Of a stretch of DNA of 64,000 bases, positions 23,823-34,400 are shown piece by piece (positions within the stretch are counted from its first letter, which is position 1; every line of letters starts with the position of its first letter). The stretch is taken from positions 25,792,001 through 25,856,000 of the forward strand of contig OZ004609.1 in the NCBI GenBank assembly GCA_963924565.1, given 5' to 3'. The DNA is from Ascidiella aspersa (Eukaryota). A model generated the notes under the pieces. That model was given only the letters and a program-made list of their open reading frames with translations. It was not told where the DNA came from and searched no databases. The position numbers and the translations under genes are program-made.

Positions 23823-25286
23823 GTTTGTTCGATCACATACACATTGCCAAAGGATAAATTTGGCTAATTTGGTACAAATAAAGAGTTTCCTGTTCGACAA
23901 AATATGAAGGAACAAATTTAAATTAGAAAAGAGAGGAAAGGATAAAGGGACAATAACGATGAAACAGTTGGGACAGATATCGAATTGTTGTATTGGACAG
24001 ATATAAAATTTTCGTTGTTGAATAAATATAACTAGGAACAAGACCTCCGAAAAACAATTGACCAACAAAGTTGATTTTAGGTTAAGGTTTAAATTACAAT
24101 AAATAGTTTTTTTTTTTAACACATAAATAGAAATATTAGCATACAGACAAAACTGATAAATATAAATAGAGCGCACAATAAGGCCATGGACTTTCGTTTA
24201 ATGCACTTAACATCAAAGTTACGATTAAGTTCGGATCAGTGTTGCTCAGAATGTAAGAGTTACGGCCACGCCAAACTTTTCTAAAACTAAATATTGCTAC
24301 GCAGCATCAAGCAGACAAGTTTGCATGTAATTTATACAAATGATGAATTTAGGTCTCAGCATTTCGAACGTTAGTCACTGTTTTTAAATGGTTTGGCTTG
24401 GAATCTTGGAATGAAGTATTTGGGGTGTTTGTATTAAAAAAAAATTGGTAGATGTTAGTTAGTGTTTCATCGAATTTCTCTGGTAGCCAGTTTGCTTCAA
24501 ATATGTTACATTTCGTTGCTTGCTAATCAAAATATCGCTTGGAATCAGACAGCTTTTAATAATTCAATATTTTAGTTTGGTGCAAATGACTTGACTTGGG
24601 ACTTGAGCGTTTCCGTCAGATTATTTTAAAAACTATCGGTCGACAAAAACAAATAAAACCAATGAAGTATATATAAAAACATTTTTACTAGTTAAGAAAG
24701 AGTTTATCTACGTGTCAAACGGGTGTGATTAAAATAAACCGTTCAGACATGCAAGCCAGAACACGCGGAATGTTTGGAATTTCGAAATCGTTGCATATCT
24801 AATGACGTACCACAAATACGCCGGCCTATCTATTAGACGTACATGCTGGACCATGACGCAGTGCGATTGCATTAGGCGGGCCGATGATCTGGACTTTAGA
24901 CTTCGCACAATGAGACGGAATGGCAATTGCTATAAATGGTAAAACACTTTGCATTTCACCTCGACGCGATCCGATGTTTGTTGGTTTGAAAAGGATTCAA
25001 AACGATAGAGGCAGAAACCTTAATTTGCTAACAAACATGTGAGGCTACGATGATATTTATACTGTAATATACTGACCGGCTATCGGCTCAGTTTAAATTC
25101 GTATTGCTGAATGGCGGAAGTAACGACGGAAAAACGGCGCTGTCTACTTCGGTCGGGTGCACCGATACGCAGTATCGGACGAACGCCGGGGGTATTAGAT
25201 CGGACTAGTGCGGTCAGCGGTCAGCATCCCCGACGCACAAAGCCACCGAGAATTACCAGGCAAATTCACGCCCGTTTCCCAGCGCC

Positions 25287-28200
25287 TCAGACGAAGCCCG
25301 CAGTGGTGACGGGATACGAGTGGTTGGTGTGCCAAGTGGAAGAGGCAGCAGTGGTAGAGGTGACGTTGCTAAAGGGCAGTGGGGTCGTGTGCTCGCCGGC
25401 GCCGCCGCTGCACACGCTGTCGTTGTTCTCGTGCGTTAGATCGGTGATGATGGTTTGTACCGACACGATGGTGCCCGCAATGAAGCCCACCAGGCCAAAG
25501 ATGCAGATGAAAACGTCCTTGGCCACCGACCACTTGGACATCTTCGCCGTTCTGCTGCTGCAACAACAAAGAAAATGGCCTAAAACAGAAGCGGTCGTTG
25601 TTGCATGGCAGGTCGACGCTCGTTTAAACTACGAGGGTTATTAAGGTCCGTCGATTTCGCAATGTAGGTTGCGCATAAAAAACGTTTGTGTAGTGCGATT
25701 CTCAACAATGGTGTTTTCTAGTTTGCGGCACACACGGGGCTGCCCCTTATGAAAAAAAAGTGTCGTGCGATTTTTGTTCGCGGCTTGCACAACGTGCACG
25801 TTTTATGTAAAACAGCCTGAAAAACAATTAACAGCCGTTTGTTTTCAAAGCTTCGTTCTGGCGATCGTTCGAAGGACACTAATGCGAGAGAATCGAAGAC
25901 AATGGAATCCCCCTTGAATCGAGCTACCTTAACAAGATTCCAAGTATAATAAATGATGGATTAATCAATTATTCTGTCGTATTAAGTAATTAGATATTTT
26001 ACTACAATTTATGCAGATTTACAATCGTTTAGTGGCGGGTAATATAAACTTTTTTTATGCCTAATATCCAACCCCCAGTGGGCAATAAATTACTTGACGA
26101 TAAAGCAACAATTCAAGGATAAATGGTTGCAGAAAATATCAGATTTCGGGTAGAAAACTTTAACACGTGTTACAGACAGGGGTCGGTTCCGGGCGGGTTT
26201 TAATCCTGATTTCTACACACCATAAACAGCGCAAGCACCCTGACAGATAAACCTGTTGTGAGGACGTTCGCGGACCGACCCATACTTACTTATTGCTCAC
26301 GGCTCCGTTGATCAGTGGGTCAGTGTAGGGGGCGGAGTCGGGTGCGTAGAAGGTTAGGATGTGGATTATCGGCGGAAATATAAGCGCCAGAAAGGAAGAA
26401 GAGAAGGCGCCTATCAGCGAGATGTAGTCACCCAGGTCCGGGATGGCAATCGCCAGGAGACCTGCGCGCGCGTCAAAATTCGTCACAATTGCGTTTATAT
26501 TCTAATTCTTGTTATAAACATATTTTGGTTAGTATAGTGGTTGTTATCACCAGTTAATAGCCAGGCACAAACATAACCGGGTGTTTTGCTCACATATTAA
26601 AATTGAAATTTGGCCATTAATTATATCAATGTGAGTCGTGCTTAGGATTAAGCAACGCTGTGGTGTTTGTGTCTGGGTATTTGTTCTACAATTAGCCACA
26701 ATCTACAACCAAAATTAGGAAAAAAACGCAGGTTTCTACACCAAGTAATATTAGTTTTTGTAATCTACGATATATGAAACATTAGGGCTTTCCCGTCACC
26801 AAACGCTAAAAATGACATGCCAACATGCAGCTATACAAACACACACAAAAAAAACAGAAAATTTTCATGCTTTAAGCTAGCTCTTTTAGTTTAAATATTC
26901 GATCATGTTTCCGTATATCAATTATGTAAACCAAACCAATACTTGACATGAATAAAGCAAATGCATTTTGGTATTTCCTATGTCAGTATGGAGTTAAATA
27001 AAATGTTTTAAGTTAGCAAAGGGTTAAAATTAGGAATAATTTCTCGTGATTCGTATCTTTAAAACTGCATTTTTATGTATTTTTAATTTACTAGAAACTG
27101 GTAAATCGTGCCCAAATTCCTAGTTTTGTATTGCGCCAGGTCCGTTCGCTTGTGCGAACGAGCAGCAACTCACAGGCCACAATTGAAAGCATGACTCGAA
27201 AAAGGGCGTCCATCAGTTTCGGGCGACCGAAGCTTTCGAACCAGGGCTGGAGCAGATGCAAGGGCACGTAGAACTGGATCAGCCAGCCGATAAAAATGCT
27301 CGCAGAGTAGAGGACTTTGGTCGACTGAGCGAGTCTTAGAAAAAGTACGGCATTGGTTATGGGCAGATTAGACGCATGGACACCTGTCCTGCGGGCATTT
27401 CGCTGTTAGACATTTCGCAAGCCTATTAGCTAATGTGGCAAGGATCTTTGTGGTGGTGATAAAGGTGCTAGGCATAAAATTATGCTATACGAGTGAGTCG
27501 ATCGGCCTTTGTAATGGTTGACCCGCTGCTTTCAGGGTGGGTAGCAGAGGTATTTTAGCGCAATAGTCTGAAACTCACAAAATTTACCATTCAAGCAGCG
27601 CGTTTCGCGTGCTACCGGTCATGCATCGACAGAGCAAACACAAAACAAACCACGATTAAACTATAATTGCGAGGTTAGGCGAACCGCTACCGTTAGTGAA
27701 AAGAAAGAGAAATAAGTGTCGGTGCAACCAACGCTACCAAACAAACACCAGCGTGCGATGTGCTCGGGGGAGCCAAAACGCGTGTCTTACAAGTAAGGAT
27801 TACGAGGAACAGACGCATGACGATTTGCCAGCAGAGCTCGTTGCTCGGCATGAAACGTCGCTTCAGCTTGGTCCAGAGAATTTGCGCGGGCACGTAAAAC
27901 TGAATTAGGTAGGTGGAGCCGATAACCAGCGTTAAGAGCACCTTCACCGACTGGTAAAGCCTGGGTGGAAGAATTTAACGGTCAGGGTTGGCGCTCGTAA
28001 AAAGGGCCAAGCGTACGCTCGAGCAAACAATAGCTTTAAAACCTCGACGGGCTCCGGATAACCTTGATGTAAAACTTGTTTACATCAAAAAAGTAAACTG
28101 GCTTTAGGCCGTTGTTTGACAACCATATAAAACCAGTCTCACATATGAATAATTATTTCCTGTAGACGACCTCTTTAATTTTAATAAACAAAATAGAACT

Positions 28201-31200
28201 GCTTTTAATATAGTGTCATTAGTCATTAGGTCTAACCAATAAGACTTTAAAAATCAAACAATTTAATATAGCCTTGCTTATATATTGGTAAAATGCAAAT
28301 GATATAAAAAATATGATGTTGTACACAGTAAACAACAGCCAATGTGTTTGCTTAATTACATTTTGCCCTGTTGAAATTACATTTTTGCCCTGTTGAACTT
28401 AAATAGGTTATCGAAACGTTGGTACATGTACATGTATTAGTAAAAAAACATTTGCCCAAAAAAACACATGTTGGAAAAGACAACAGAAATGTTTCAACTT
28501 ACGGATCTGCCACTGGAAGATTCAAGGTAATGCTTCCACAAATTTTATCACCAAACTTTAGGTACCCAACCAAACCCAGACCAATGTAGAGGAAAGAGAC
28601 CATGCTCATTCCGGAGTATAAAATGGCAGGAAAGTGACTTGGGTTTTTCATTTCATTTTCAATTGGCAAAATCTAAAATACAGTAATTGGAAATATAATT
28701 TCAGAAATGTCACTTTTAGGATCATAAAAGATAAGTTAAGCCTGTTAAATAGCATTAATGTAAATAATTGTTTTTTTAACTTACCACACCAATGCCTTCA
28801 AAAGCATATATAGCTGTACCAAAGAACATTGGAATGTTTGTTACATTGCCAACTAAAGGTCTAGAATCAATTGGTGGAAGATTCTAAAACGAAGGTATAA
28901 AGTTTTTTTTTTTTTTTTCTATAAGCTAGACAAAAACAGTATGGGGTAAATTATTTAAAGTAAGTTTAAATCACAAATCAAGCATTCATGAACCCTTCTT
29001 TCTGTTCTACTGAGGTTAATTAGCAGAAAGACGTTTTAAATGTTTTATAGTAACATTAGAAAAAGTTTAGTTGTTCTTTGCCTTTCTTGCGTTTCATAAT
29101 TTAGAAATAATACAATAACCAAGTAAAATCAGTTTAAAGTTATCACTAAACGCCATACATTGTTATGCTGAATTTTTTTGGGAAAAGGTGCAATTTTCTG
29201 CACAAAGGTATGGTAAAACAGTGTTTCTCAACGCTTTTACTCAGCGACACAAAAACTAAAGCTTAAACCTAACGGTGAAGCTTTGGGGACACACCGGCTG
29301 GACATTATATGTGAACTTAAATAAGATACAGAAAGCACTTACTGGCAATACATAGTATAAAATGATGGCAAGGGACACAACCGTTGCTGCATTGGCAAAA
29401 ATGGAGAACCAAGCAAGAATCTTTAGGTGCTTTATAAAGGAGAGCAAAACAATAGGAACAAATATCATGGCCATGAACCACCTGTCACTGGGGGCAGATG
29501 CATAATACTGGATGACAACCTGCATAGAAACCAATAAAAATTTGCTTATACCTAATTATTATAAAATAGAGATTTTACCCATTGGTTTTATGACAAGCTA
29601 ACCAAACTAAGATATATTTCAGGGATGCAAAATCTAAATACTTTTAACCTGTCTAATATTTTGAGCCATGAAGACGAAGTAAACACAGCAGAAACCCAGT
29701 TGAGTGATCATTAGAAACACATTGACCGCTGTGCCTGCCGCATTCGCATACTTCTGTATGCCAGGAATTGGGCCATGTTGCACAGCGGTCTTCATCACAG
29801 TTGAATAATCCATTGACATTATACCTTCTCGTCTGTTCAATATATGAAAAAAAATAACAATTGATTTAATGTGAAGTGTATTTATGTAGGTTAGGGTGGT
29901 CCAAGACTTCAAGCACTTACGGACAGAAAATCAGTCACATGTTTTTGCATGCCACACAAAATGAATAAATCAACTGGTGTCCTAATATTTGTTTATTATA
30001 TGTTAAATTGGTTAAGCTTTCTTTGTTTTTATTGTTTAACTTTTTTCATGTTCTGGTTGTAGTTTAAAACTGCATGATCTAAATAGTACGCAAATAGAAA
30101 AGTTTAAACCTCACTGAATTACACAGTGTTCTGTACACCACAGAATATAATAGACCAGGGTAGGAACAACCCTGCTTTAGGCTATAAACAACATTTTAAA
30201 ATCTTATTTTATTTTAAAATTTAGGTTTTCATTCCATGAAACAAAAACTAACAGCGCTGGCAGACCATAGTGGCACATTGCGACAGCATAAAATAACAGC
30301 CTTACTTGCTAAAGTGCTTTGAACATATGACCAGTAATCGCATGCAGTGAACACAGATAATTGCCATTAATAGCAGAAGTATGGGACCAAGTAATATTCC
30401 AGCATGCTTAATTGCCCAAGGAAGACCAAGTAACCCTGTTCCAATGTTGCCTTTTAAAAGATGCATCATAGTAGCCACATCACTGTTATAAAAAATAAAT
30501 TACACTTGACAAAACCTTAGCATAGAAATAAAATTTTGATTAAAATACTTTTTGATTAAATAAATATTAACGGAAAAATGTACATATGGCCTACAAAAAA
30601 TATTTTGTACAGCAGTTTCAAAACAAACCATAAAATAAAAACGTTTATGTAACAACCATTTTAACATATTAAATTGCTGCTGCTTGAAAATGAATGTCAA
30701 AGCCAAATATATAAAGTAAATGGAAACCATCTTAATAAAGACATTAGACATCTATTTAACCTATTTAGTTTTGACCAGTATTTTCAAGCTACATTACAGA
30801 TCTGTATATGGTGCAAATATGATTTATGATTTTGTTTTTATTTGTTGAACACCAAAATGATTACCACTTTTTGACTATAAAATGCATTCACGGAAAAATC
30901 ATAACAAAGGCTGACCAGCAACAAAAAATTAACTTACGAAGTTGCATGAGGGTTGTACATCCTCTGGCTGTGCAGCTCAACATCTGGTGGGTCATCGCTG
31001 CAATAGTCATATTTTTCAACATTCCTAAACAGGAAATTGGGAAAAAATGCTCTTGTAATGGATCACAAATTGTATTTTTTTAGACGCGTGGGAACTGCTA
31101 TCGGATTATTTTTATAATTGCAATACATATCCTATTTTTGCTTTTAAGACTTAAGATTTCTATATTGAATAAATCACTTAATTATTGAGTAAATCACCAA

Positions 31201-31418
31201 AACAGCAAACTAGATAGTTAGAGTATTTAATTCAAAATAAAAATAGATTTTCACAAAATCTTGTGGCAACACAGCTAGCATAAGCATCACATCTGGATTT
31301 TTTAAGTAAATAGTGAGCATCAGTTTGGAAGGCACAAAAAATAATTCATTACAACTTACGCATTTGCATTTTGCTCGTCGTCTGAGCCAAGAAGCGGTTT
31401 TCTTTGTTCCTTGCTCAT
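25287..31418 (-). CDS. Proton-coupled amino acid transporter (SLC36/PAT family), about 518-521 aa, with two alternative versions of coding exon 8
   Basis: Exons 31418-31360, 31024-30938, 30482-30306, 29832-29649, 29519-29343, 28883-28785, 28672-28503, [27960-27791 OR 27334-27174], 26461-26290 and 25557-25287. SLC36 motifs: [94 protein letters not shown]. Orthology to a specific vertebrate paralogue cannot be assigned. Confidence 0.93.
27174..27334 (-). other. Alternative (mutually exclusive) exon 8B of the SLC36 gene
   Basis: TTTTCTAAG| acceptor and |GTGAGT donor. Open frame [53 protein letters not shown] is homologous to exon 8A and has the same entry and exit phases. Confidence 0.88.
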
Positions 31419-34400
31419 TGTGGGAAAAGTGTTGTAAGAATTACTTCTTGAGTTTATTTTCTGTAAAACACGACACTATAAATTGCTGATTTACACTTAA
31501 CAAACTTCTACTAAACTCAAAAGCTTATTTTAGCTTATAATAATTTTACGAACTGATCGGTTTACACAACATGAGCATGCATCCGATCAGACGCCACTAA
31601 TATAAACAAACTACTGGTAGTTTTCAAACCTTTGACTCCATAACACGATTTTTGCAACTCCTTTCGTTAAACTTTTAACAGATATTGGCTACGATTGAAA
31701 CTAACGATATCGCGGGATAGACAGAACATATACAAGTGTCAAAGAACAAAGAATAGCAGCGAGCGTACACGCCGATAGCCGTAGCAGTACTTTTCCGTTG
31801 TGACGGCCGCGCAATCAGCTGTTAGCGCACAGAGAAAAAATACGACGTCATAATAGAGCAAACAAAGGGCGTGCGACGGGTAAAACGTTCGTGGTTCTGG
31901 GTTGCGGGGATGTACTTCCAAGCACTTGTGGCGCGTTTTGAGAAAAGCTGCCGGCTCACGGAATAAAGTTTAAATAAGGTTCTGCGAAAAGCCTTTGCCT
32001 AAATCGGTTTTGAAACAGGATAAGATACCAACCACAAATTCGTTTATTACTTTATTTTATATAATTGAGGACGGATAAAAAAATAAGACGCGGCCTGGCT
32101 ACCAGGATATGATTTAAAAAGCATTGTAAAGCCACCGTTAAAATTCAGTTTGCTTTTTCCAAACGCAAAAGTCACAGGGCGGCCAACAACAAAAATCACG
32201 GGACCGGCTATGTTTTGTTTGCCTTGCGTGCAAATGCACACTGTGGACTTTGAGTTTGTGGCAAAAATACCAGCAACGGGGTTTGAGCAAATATGGACCA
32301 ATAAGCGCTACAAGCGAAAGGTAAGTGCTGCGTGGGCGTCTTGGGGAAATCTGCTAAGTTAACGACTGGCGGTTCGCATCCTTTAGTCTCACCCGTCTAC
32401 ACGAAAATGTTAGTTGCCTTTCCATCAGGAAACGTGTTTCGCTTCTGCCAGAAAAGCATTACGTCATTACAAACGACATGGAAGATCGGGCGGCGATCAA
32501 CACAAGCTCGAACATTATGGGAATAGAGCATTTCAAAGCTTTTGACTATTGATGCGATAAGGCTATAGCGCTCCCACAATTGTTTTGCATGTTAAAATGT
32601 TAACGTTTATAAGTATTTTTTGCAACTAAGTTTTAATGCTTCACGCCCACGCCTGTCTCAAACGAATGACTTCCGCCATGGATATCGTATAGTTTTAGCA
32701 GGCGGCCAGTTTAAAAACAGATGCCACCGAACTCAAAATACTTCAAAAGTATGCATTATATTTCAATGCGGTTAAAAACGTTCGTTACAAGACAAAGCAA
32801 GCCGTTGACTAGTTAAAATTGAGAAGATTTAGATTTATCCCTGTACGATAGTCAAACTGCAAACATATACATTTAAGGCTCAAAGTTGTTGTTAACAGAA
32901 AGTTGTTTTCTTTCGCGGATTGGTATTGGGGCCGTTGTCAATTATTTGCGCTGCCTAATGTTTATTAAATACGTGTTAAAACCACGTCGTGAAATTTCCA
33001 CGTTATCTCGAAATCTTATATTTTGCATTCATAGACGGAGTCAACGGACAATGAGTGAAATAAAGCGCAAAAATAAGTGCACATTGTCAGATTTTAAAAT
33101 GACGTGTAAGTTTGGGTTTATTAACAATTATAGGAAACGACTTTGCAGAAATTAAAATACGAACGCTCGCTGTTCATACTTTAGTCAAAACAAACAAACA
33201 CAAATCGTTTTTACCAACGTAAAATAATAATAATTCGACATAGCATTCTCTTATCTGGGCGACATAGTTAGCCGCTAACTTCCTTAACTTCCAATTAAAG
33301 ACGACAGACCTCTGTCCATCTATTTTATTACCCTTTTAAGATCTTTTACCCGGAAACTTCGTGCAACGTTTTGTATTGCCAAGGGTACGGTAATCCCAAT
33401 ATTTGCGTTTATTTCGTTATAAAACAACTGACACCATAATGATCAAACAAAATGTAACATCGGGAACATCGTAAAAATGGTCATAAAAGGGTTGTGAGTA
33501 AACCCTAACAGAAGCAAGATACAGTCATTCCACTTTAATAGGAGAAGAAGGATTTTGTGTTCAATTTTAATTTTGTTGCTTTAAGTGTTTTCAGTCGTAT
33601 CGACCAAAGAAGTGTTTGTAGATACAACAGAACAAGAATTGCAAGAAAAAATTAAATGGTGTAAAGTTTGTTGTAAGTGACGTTACATAACTTGATAAAG
33701 GTTATATTGAAATCCGATAAACAAACTACATTGCCTTCCATGTGATGCAAAACAATAAAATATTTTAAAAACTGTTCAACAGAGGTATTTGATCAAAGAT
33801 TTCCAGTGTCAAACAAACACAATTTGTTTTAAAACTAAATAAAATCTTTGCAACATGTTATATGAGTGTGGACATTTATCTCTTGCCTTATTACACTTAT
33901 TACAAATGTTAGGTTACAAAGAACCACTGCCATTGTAAATCGTGTTTAATTAGTAACTAAATAAAAATTCAAAAAAAAATGGCTTCATAGTTTGTTTTTT
34001 GCGTTAAATGTTTTATTTTTGTTTTATTTTAGTATAAAAGGGTTAAATAAAAGATGTTACACTCAAAAAATGTAAAACACATATGTATATATTTATATGC
34101 CAGACACAGAAATACAGGAAATTAATATCTATGTGAAGCAAGAGTTGGAAGAAAATAAAATGTGTGTCTGTAAATCATTGCTGCTGTTTTTTATTGTATA
34201 TATATATGCTTTCATCTTAAACAGATTATATAATGCAAGACTTGTTTGTAACTGTTTTGGAAGTTAAAAAGATTTCAAAGTTGTGCGAATGTATTGGTGA
34301 TTTGAGTTATACCATTTCAGAGTTATTCAACTCTTATATGCATAGCAAAGCAAACATGATCCAAGCATATTAGCTATTTATAAATGTTCAATAATATTTG

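Follow-up and report, generated by a model that had tools for sequence, protein, structure and literature searches.

An SLC36 (PAT1-like) transporter gene of the tunicate Ascidiella aspersa was analysed in a stretch of 64,000 nucleotides (nt) of contig OZ004609.1 (assembly GCA_963924565.1, positions 25,792,001 to 25,856,000), referred to below as the window. All positions are those of the whole window, and the features of the gene are on the minus strand. The coding span occupies 25287-31445, with an approximate 5' limit, and was traced by colinear tblastn pieces of the Clavelina and Ciona orthologues from 31445 to about 25290. Between the constitutive exons 7 (28503-28672, 170 nt) and 9 (26290-26461, 172 nt), two homologous exons stand in tandem, 8A (27791-27960, 170 nt) and 8B (27174-27334, 161 nt). 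It is very probable that 8A and 8B are a real, conserved pair of mutually exclusive exons, yielding two transporters, and that the duplication behind them took place before the ascidian orders split. Such a pair had been proposed from an earlier reading of the letters alone (the sequence-only reading), in which the coordinates, lengths and GT/AG sites of both exons proved exact to the base and the translations matched letter for letter.

Exon 8A has the acceptor ...ccacccag/G and the donor T/gtaaga, and exon 8B has the acceptor ...tttctaag/A and the donor T/gtgagt. Exon 7 ends in CC, and the Pro codon is completed either way, by the G that 8A supplies or by the A that 8B supplies. Both alternative exons end in T, from which exon 9 completes TGT (Cys). 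The two exons are of equal phase, each beginning after two codon bases and ending with one. In a local frame check, the chains 7-8A-9 and 7-8B-9 stayed open, whereas 7-8A-8B-9 stopped inside 8B (within about 20 codons of the shift) and 7-9 stopped early in exon 9 (within 11 codons). This bears out the earlier description of both exons as running from phase 2 to phase 1, with a frameshift when both or neither are included.

The peptides of 8A and 8B were related by BLASTP (15 of 28 residues identical, E value 8e-7) and shared 19 of 53 residues over the full length. Nucleotide identity between the exons was 47%, and only 36% at third codon positions; synonymous sites were saturated, and 10 of the 19 shared residues were written with different codons. 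The pair is read as an old duplication held at the protein level. A duplicate introduced by the assembly is ruled out by the 47% nucleotide identity. An extension of 8A upstream is likewise ruled out, as an in-frame stop lies six codons before it, and no third copy of exon 8 was found within the window. An open reading frame at 27091-27267, starting from an internal GTG, covers the 3' two thirds of 8B, so the earlier statement that the list of open reading frames missed 8B entirely was incorrect.

Use of the exons in RNA

RNA reads came from one stranded run of the same species (X5), of which about 6% was read and mapped to 25200-30600. There were 78 reads on this interval, and a joint was listed only when at least three reads supported it. 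All 78 reads had the direction that a usual stranded library gives for RNA from the minus strand. The threshold was reached by two joints. One connects exon 6 (28785-28883, 99 nt, constitutive) to exon 7 (28672/28785, five reads) and fixes the 3' end of exon 6. The other connects 8B to exon 9 and was seen in four reads with four different starts; it skips 712 nt between GT and AG and, with a shift of 2, falls exactly at 26461/27174. The intron between 8B and exon 9 (26462-27173, 712 nt) is spliced out in RNA, and 8B is in use in the RNA of A. aspersa.

The read depths of the bins were 7.17 for exon 7, 3.67 for 8A, 4.25 for 8B and 6.16 for exon 9. After correction for the exonic share of each bin, they were about 9.5, 5, 5 and 6.5, respectively, and the corrected depths of 8A and 8B together roughly equalled the depth of the flanking exons. 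The depth dropped to 0.6 after the 8A donor and was zero between 8B and exon 9. Intron 7 (27961-28502), which lies upstream of the alternative pair, carried reads on part of its length at a depth of 1.3-2.8, whereas the introns elsewhere in the gene had 0-0.6. This suggests that intron 7 is slowly removed or partially retained.

Seven coding differences between the RNA run and the assembly were noted, at 26332, 27192, 27250, 28824, 28843, 30449 and 30455. Four of these were synonymous and three conservative (A>V in exon 9, M>V in 8B and V>A in exon 6), and they are probably polymorphisms.

In the proposed mechanism, splicing would place either 8A or 8B between exons 7 and 9. Two full-length transporters would result, differing only in transmembrane helix 8 (TM8), the short loop after TM8 and most of TM9, which corresponds to residues 331-386 of human PAT1. 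Transcripts with both exons or with neither would lose the frame and would presumably be removed by nonsense-mediated decay. The frame rule would keep the protein output exclusive by removing wrong products only, and the choice made by the spliceosome would lie outside this rule. Steric exclusion was rejected as the basis of that choice, because the intron between 8A and 8B (27335-27790, read from the sequence) is, at 456 nt, too long. Incompatible spliceosomes were also rejected, as nothing sets the donors (gtaaga and gtgagt) or the acceptors of the two exons apart from ordinary GT-AG sites. An inverted-repeat scan of 26200-28700, in this species alone, gave short imperfect pairs only, none of them placed like a docking/selector set for competing RNA pairing. 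Intron 7, with its partial retention, might be the point of regulation, but this is a guess.

Conservation and age of the exon pair

Isoforms of related species were found among the members of 90% protein clusters, and the exon 8 segment was cut out of each protein and compared. Three ascidians have RefSeq isoforms of both types with identical flanks: Ciona intestinalis (A-type X1, P0283; B-type X2, P0285), Clavelina lepadiformis (A-type X2, P0153; B-type X1, P0280) and Styela clava (A-type X1, P0271; B-type X2, P0272). A B-type also occurs among older Ciona models (XP_002123949.1). Four transcript-derived proteins (JGI, Logan), probably from other tunicates, had one type each. Exactly one version was present in all 27 of the tunicate protein models and transcript-derived proteins examined. 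The segment is 55-56 residues long in the A-types of the relatives and 53 residues long in the B-types (57 in Clavelina).

Identity between orthologous segments was 38-62% for the A-type and 45-62% for the B-type, while the constitutive exons 7 and 9 reached 54-76% and A compared with B gave about 30-47%. The 8A segment of the window was 62% identical to the Ciona A-type and 57% identical to the Clavelina A-type, and for 8B the identity to the B-types of the three relatives was 45-57%. A maximum-likelihood tree was built from the segment; it has 56 columns and is weak in detail for that reason. The B-types of the window, Ciona, Clavelina and Styela formed one clade together with two transcript-derived proteins (93/86). 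The 8A segment of the window clustered with the A-types of Ciona and Clavelina (97/94), and the position of the Styela A-type was not resolved. Vertebrate PAT1 and PAT4 formed a clade of their own, apart from both tunicate types.

Residues specific to each type were compared in four species (A. aspersa, Ciona, Clavelina and Styela). At position 2 the A-type has Y or C and the B-type has A, and at position 9 the A-type has L or F and the B-type has Y. Just before the shared (L/A)(I/L)Q(F/M)YVP, the A-type has T or S followed by Y, and the B-type has G followed by W or Y; the contrast of TY with GW that the sequence-only reading had pointed out thus separates the types in each of the four species. 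Beyond the YVP kink, W in the A-type stands against PW in the B-type. The loop of the A-type is basic, with the pattern K(R/S)(R/K)(F/C).P.(N/S), whereas that of the B-type is different and, except in Clavelina, three residues shorter. In the window, 8A accordingly carries TM8, a loop with KRRFMPSN and most of TM9, and 8B shows the pattern LAQS.K.LYS...GWL.Q.YVP...PW.

As the B-types form one clade, the duplication of exon 8 is older than the split between Stolidobranchia on one side and Phlebobranchia and Aplousobranchia on the other. The tandem duplication would have occurred before these three orders separated, a split which is probably several hundred million years old. Both copies have been kept in Ciona, Clavelina and Styela, where A- and B-types are present and share the type-specific residues. 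Together with the B-type clade, this agrees with the earlier suggestion of long selection on both copies.

No swapped segment was found in eight non-tunicate clusters (amphioxus, crinoid, locusts, Aedes, thrips, copepod, Daphnia and elephant shark), in which all isoforms had one version; this is a limited sample, and a swapped isoform could sit in another cluster. In the tunicates, the A- and B-types sat in the same 90% cluster. The exon pair therefore appears, from these protein sequences, to be limited to tunicates among the lineages sampled. Region-limited protein searches with the B-type segments of Clavelina and Styela returned nothing beyond their own cluster, in an index which hides the B-type where the representative is an A-type (Ciona and Clavelina). 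One of the proteins, P0002 (JGI, 364 residues, probably tunicate), ends in ...LTCKFA directly after the B-type segment. The ending suggests that a gtaagtttgc-like donor was read through and the intron retained; P0289, from the same cluster, shows normal splicing.

Family membership, fold and gene layout

The assignment to SLC36 made in the sequence-only reading is well supported by sequence comparison, and the gene is taken to be the tunicate orthologue of this proton-coupled amino acid transporter (PAT) family. Of seven exon pieces searched, three passed the curated cut-off of the Pfam family Aa_trans (PF01490) by themselves, at the colinear positions 8-60, 214-267 (exon 7) and 337-373 (exon 9). 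Exon 8A matched positions 273-335, below the cut-off. When searched alone in the PDB, 8A (E value 4e-4) and 8B (1.2e-4) each had a single match, which was human PAT1 (SLC36A1, 9v3t), at residues 331-386 in both cases. A profile of the orthologues gave an E value of 1.5e-184 for PAT1, compared with 5e-14 for AUX1 and 3e-9 for SLC38A9, and the orthologues carry the database names PAT1 or PAT1-like. In an alignment read by eye, the human PAT1 pocket residues G59/N60/T63, F154/Y158 and E270 were kept, and F267 was replaced by Y. The pocket motifs GNIGTG (TM1), GFCCVY (TM3) and YAFEGIG (TM6) are all in constitutive exons. Exon 6 encodes YAFEGIGV and holds the equivalent of E270; at the two neighbouring positions the exon shares A and V with human PAT4, in place of the S and M of PAT1. 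From its family, the protein is predicted to be a proton-coupled transporter of small amino acids.

The fold was modelled with AlphaFold on the two natural Ciona isoforms, using an alignment of 105 sequences. The A and B models had the same fold, with a predicted template modelling score of 0.80-0.81 and block means of the predicted local distance difference test of 87-98 over the swapped part; the modelling of both isoforms envisaged in the sequence-only reading points, for Ciona, to a shared fold. In the models TM8, which lies entirely within the swapped segment, runs from 340 to 373 in B and from 340 to 375 in A, where it is kinked at 361; a loop of five residues follows, and then TM9, which starts at 379/381 and of which the segment takes in the first 15-16 residues. 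This placement agrees with the exchange of TM8-TM9 that had been put forward. The best matches of the Ciona B model among solved structures were LAX3/AUX1 and SLC38A9 (template modelling score 0.73-0.81 by target length), in a fold library older than the PAT1 entries. Judged on the Ciona orthologue, the predicted structure corresponds to the eleven-helix LeuT-type fold.

The genome (308.6 Mb, 75 contigs) was searched for related genes; these searches score the best candidates only and give lower bounds. In the window no paralogue bearing such a pair was found, and among the best candidates genome-wide the exon 7 peptide, the 8B peptide and the Styela protein P0166 matched only this gene. When eight other Aa_trans loci were compared with SLC36 proteins, six had no match and two had weak matches only. 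Styela has a second SLC36-like gene (P0166). Within these lower-bound searches, A. aspersa may have a single SLC36-type gene.

Downstream of the pair, exon 9 encodes the rest of TM9 and TM10, and the last coding exon (25287-25557, about 270 nt, RNA depth about 4.4) encodes TM11 and the tail. Three NAG sites stand in tandem at the acceptor of this last exon (cagcagcag; 25560-25552, within 25551-25560), and each of them keeps the frame. The exon may for that reason start at 25557, 25554 or 25551, and the choice alters the protein by one or two residues. Opposite this GC-rich exon, the plus strand has an open frame of 177 residues (25111-25644), which is most likely a by-product of composition and no gene. 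The GC content at third codon positions jumps within the gene, from 0.22-0.49 in the exons through exon 7 to 0.71-0.81 in 8A, 8B, exon 9 and the last exon. The boundary of this jump falls in intron 7, and the 2-kb GC profile of the window has a step at about 28000. A border between compositional domains and biased gene conversion are both possibilities.

Role of the exchange and related systems

We infer that the 8A and 8B versions would differ in function. The most likely difference would be one of transport kinetics or substrate range, by way of the TM8 wall of the pocket, where T-Y in A stands against G-W in B. In the cryo-electron microscopy structure of human PAT1, four helices (TM1, TM3, TM6 and TM8) make up the pocket; the named substrate contacts (G59, T63, F154, Y158 and F267) are on TM1, TM3 and TM6, and the proposed proton site is E270 on TM6 (PMC13473456). 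Across the fold, variation in TM6 and TM8 sets the pocket size, and a polar side chain on TM8 with which SLC38A9 handles longer substrates is missing from PAT1 (PMC13473456). Residue Q438 of SLC38A9 could not be placed on the swapped segment, as the alignment to SLC38A9 spans TM1-2 only. An effect on substrate range or kinetics is plausible because TM8 lines the pocket, while the named contacts and E270 are in constitutive exons. For a change in proton coupling there was no specific support. If the usual PAT topology applies, the TM8-TM9 loop should face the cytosol, and its basic motif KRRF.P.N is present in A only. A difference in regulation or sorting through this loop is possible.

Several points weigh against 8A and 8B as a mutually exclusive pair of functional alternatives. 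Among the 78 reads, the 7-8A, 8A-9 and 7-8B junctions were not found at three reads or more, and the use of 8A in A. aspersa rests on depth, intact sequence and conservation. The read data are compatible with transcripts carrying both 8A and 8B, although no 8A-8B joint was listed among the 78 reads at the threshold of three. The A and B isoforms of the three relatives are RefSeq computer models. In the PAT1 structure, TM8 is described only as lining the pocket, and no contact residue on TM8 is named (PMC13473456). The junction counts by which the sequence-only reading would have compared the paths 7-8A-9 and 7-8B-9 gave the 8B-9 joint in four reads and no joint of at least three reads for the other three. 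Its proposal that splicing gives two transporters gains from the use of 8B in RNA and from the swap in the models of three relatives, and lacks a listed junction for 8A.

It could be supposed from these data that only 8B is used in A. aspersa, and that 8A is a relic which is transcribed just in unspliced or intron-retaining RNA. The sole junction listed in the pair is that of 8B to exon 9, and the depth over intron 7 means that unspliced RNA could give some coverage of 8A. However, the missing joints of 8A, and that of exon 7 to 8B, say nothing at such depth, because most of the constitutive joints of the gene are unlisted too. Exon 8A is open, has good splice sites and, at 62% identity to the Ciona A-type, is as conserved as the constitutive exons. 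Its depth (about 5) is double the depth over intron 7 and falls past the donor as if the donor were used, and A-type isoforms are modelled in three relatives. A relic is very unlikely on this evidence. It is also highly improbable that the pair is a dosage switch, in which inclusion of both exons or of neither would give frame-shifted, degraded RNA and the two protein versions would be functionally the same. Double inclusion and double skipping do both stop early, and transcripts of either kind would be compatible with the read data. However, each type keeps its own residues over four species, and the types have been separate since before the ascidian orders split; such a pattern is expected for two selected proteins and unexpected for an exon kept merely to break the frame.

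The two versions might instead differ in the location or the partners of the transporter and not in its cargo, through sorting or the binding of a cytosolic partner by the loop between TM8 and TM9. This is a serious alternative because the loop differs most between the types, with the basic motif in the A-types and a different loop in the B-types. Moreover, neither the substrate contacts named for PAT1 nor its proposed proton site lies in TM8-TM9 (PMC13473456). On the other side, type-specific changes are also found in mid-TM8 (T-Y compared with G-W), beside the near-invariant QFYVP, and TM8 lines the pocket, whose size is set by variation in TM6 and TM8 (PMC13473456). A difference in sorting or partners alone is considered possible but somewhat unlikely.

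Returning to the mutually exclusive pair with two products, the choice between A and B might amount to a natural exchange of a TM8-loop-TM9 module, older than the ascidian radiation, which switches two working modes in perhaps the only SLC36-type gene; this broader view is a tentative one. If it were true, the modes could be a different substrate range or affinity (T-Y to G-W), or a surface role as opposed to a lysosomal or signalling role (basic loop), and the switch would be a ready-made structure-function experiment for the SLC36 family. The pair offers two natural versions of one SLC36 protein, whose differences lie in one loop and in a defined wall of the pocket for the substrate. As the structure of human PAT1 has just been published, the role of TM8 and of the loop is directly testable.

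The RefSeq isoforms of Ciona, Clavelina and Styela concern the same gene and the same exon pair, with identical flanks and like lengths. They differ in being computer models from other species, with no name, note or paper marking a mutually exclusive pair, whereas the A. aspersa pair was seen in the DNA of a further tunicate, where reads confirmed one of its junctions. The full-text literature searched gave no account of alternative exons in SLC36. The sequence-only reading was right to this extent in regarding the pair as undescribed for SLC36, but RefSeq already lists both isoforms in three ascidians. A survey of tandem duplicated exon substitution reported enrichment in ion transport and 236 human events, and mentions SLC12A1 (PMC9741552). 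Its systems are alike in having adjacent homologous exons of equal phase, which are ancient and exchange a membrane segment of a transport protein; no entry for SLC36 was found in its text or in two of its supplementary files (PMC9741552). The pair is already in database models and the general phenomenon is well known, so the principle is not new.

The vertebrate SLC36A1-4 genes belong to the same family, of which the constitutive exons of the window keep key residues, in GNIGTG (TM1), GFCCVY (TM3) and FEGIG (TM6). They arose by whole-gene duplication, however, whereas the tunicate pair touches only TM8-TM9. The tunicate pair is an independent event, because in the tree of the segment PAT1 and PAT4 share a clade that neither tunicate type enters. 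The idea of a one-gene alternative to the SLC36A1-4 expansion therefore holds as an analogy only, given that A and B parted independently of PAT1 and PAT4 and that Styela has its second gene. Ascidians would have diversified the SLC36 family partly by exon duplication, and vertebrates by gene duplication.

Mutually exclusive homologous exons are rare, and the carrier cases that have been studied tune affinity. In SLC7A2 (CAT-2A/CAT-2B), an amino acid transporter of the APC superfamily, the swapped part lies around the TM8-TM9 loop and alters the apparent affinity. In SLC12A1 (NKCC2), the exon A, B and F variants swap a membrane helix and alter the ion affinity. Like the A. aspersa gene, each of these is one solute-carrier gene with isoforms made through mutually exclusive homologous exons. 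They belong to other families, arose by independent duplications and have measured functional differences, whereas the A. aspersa pair is known from sequence and RNA.

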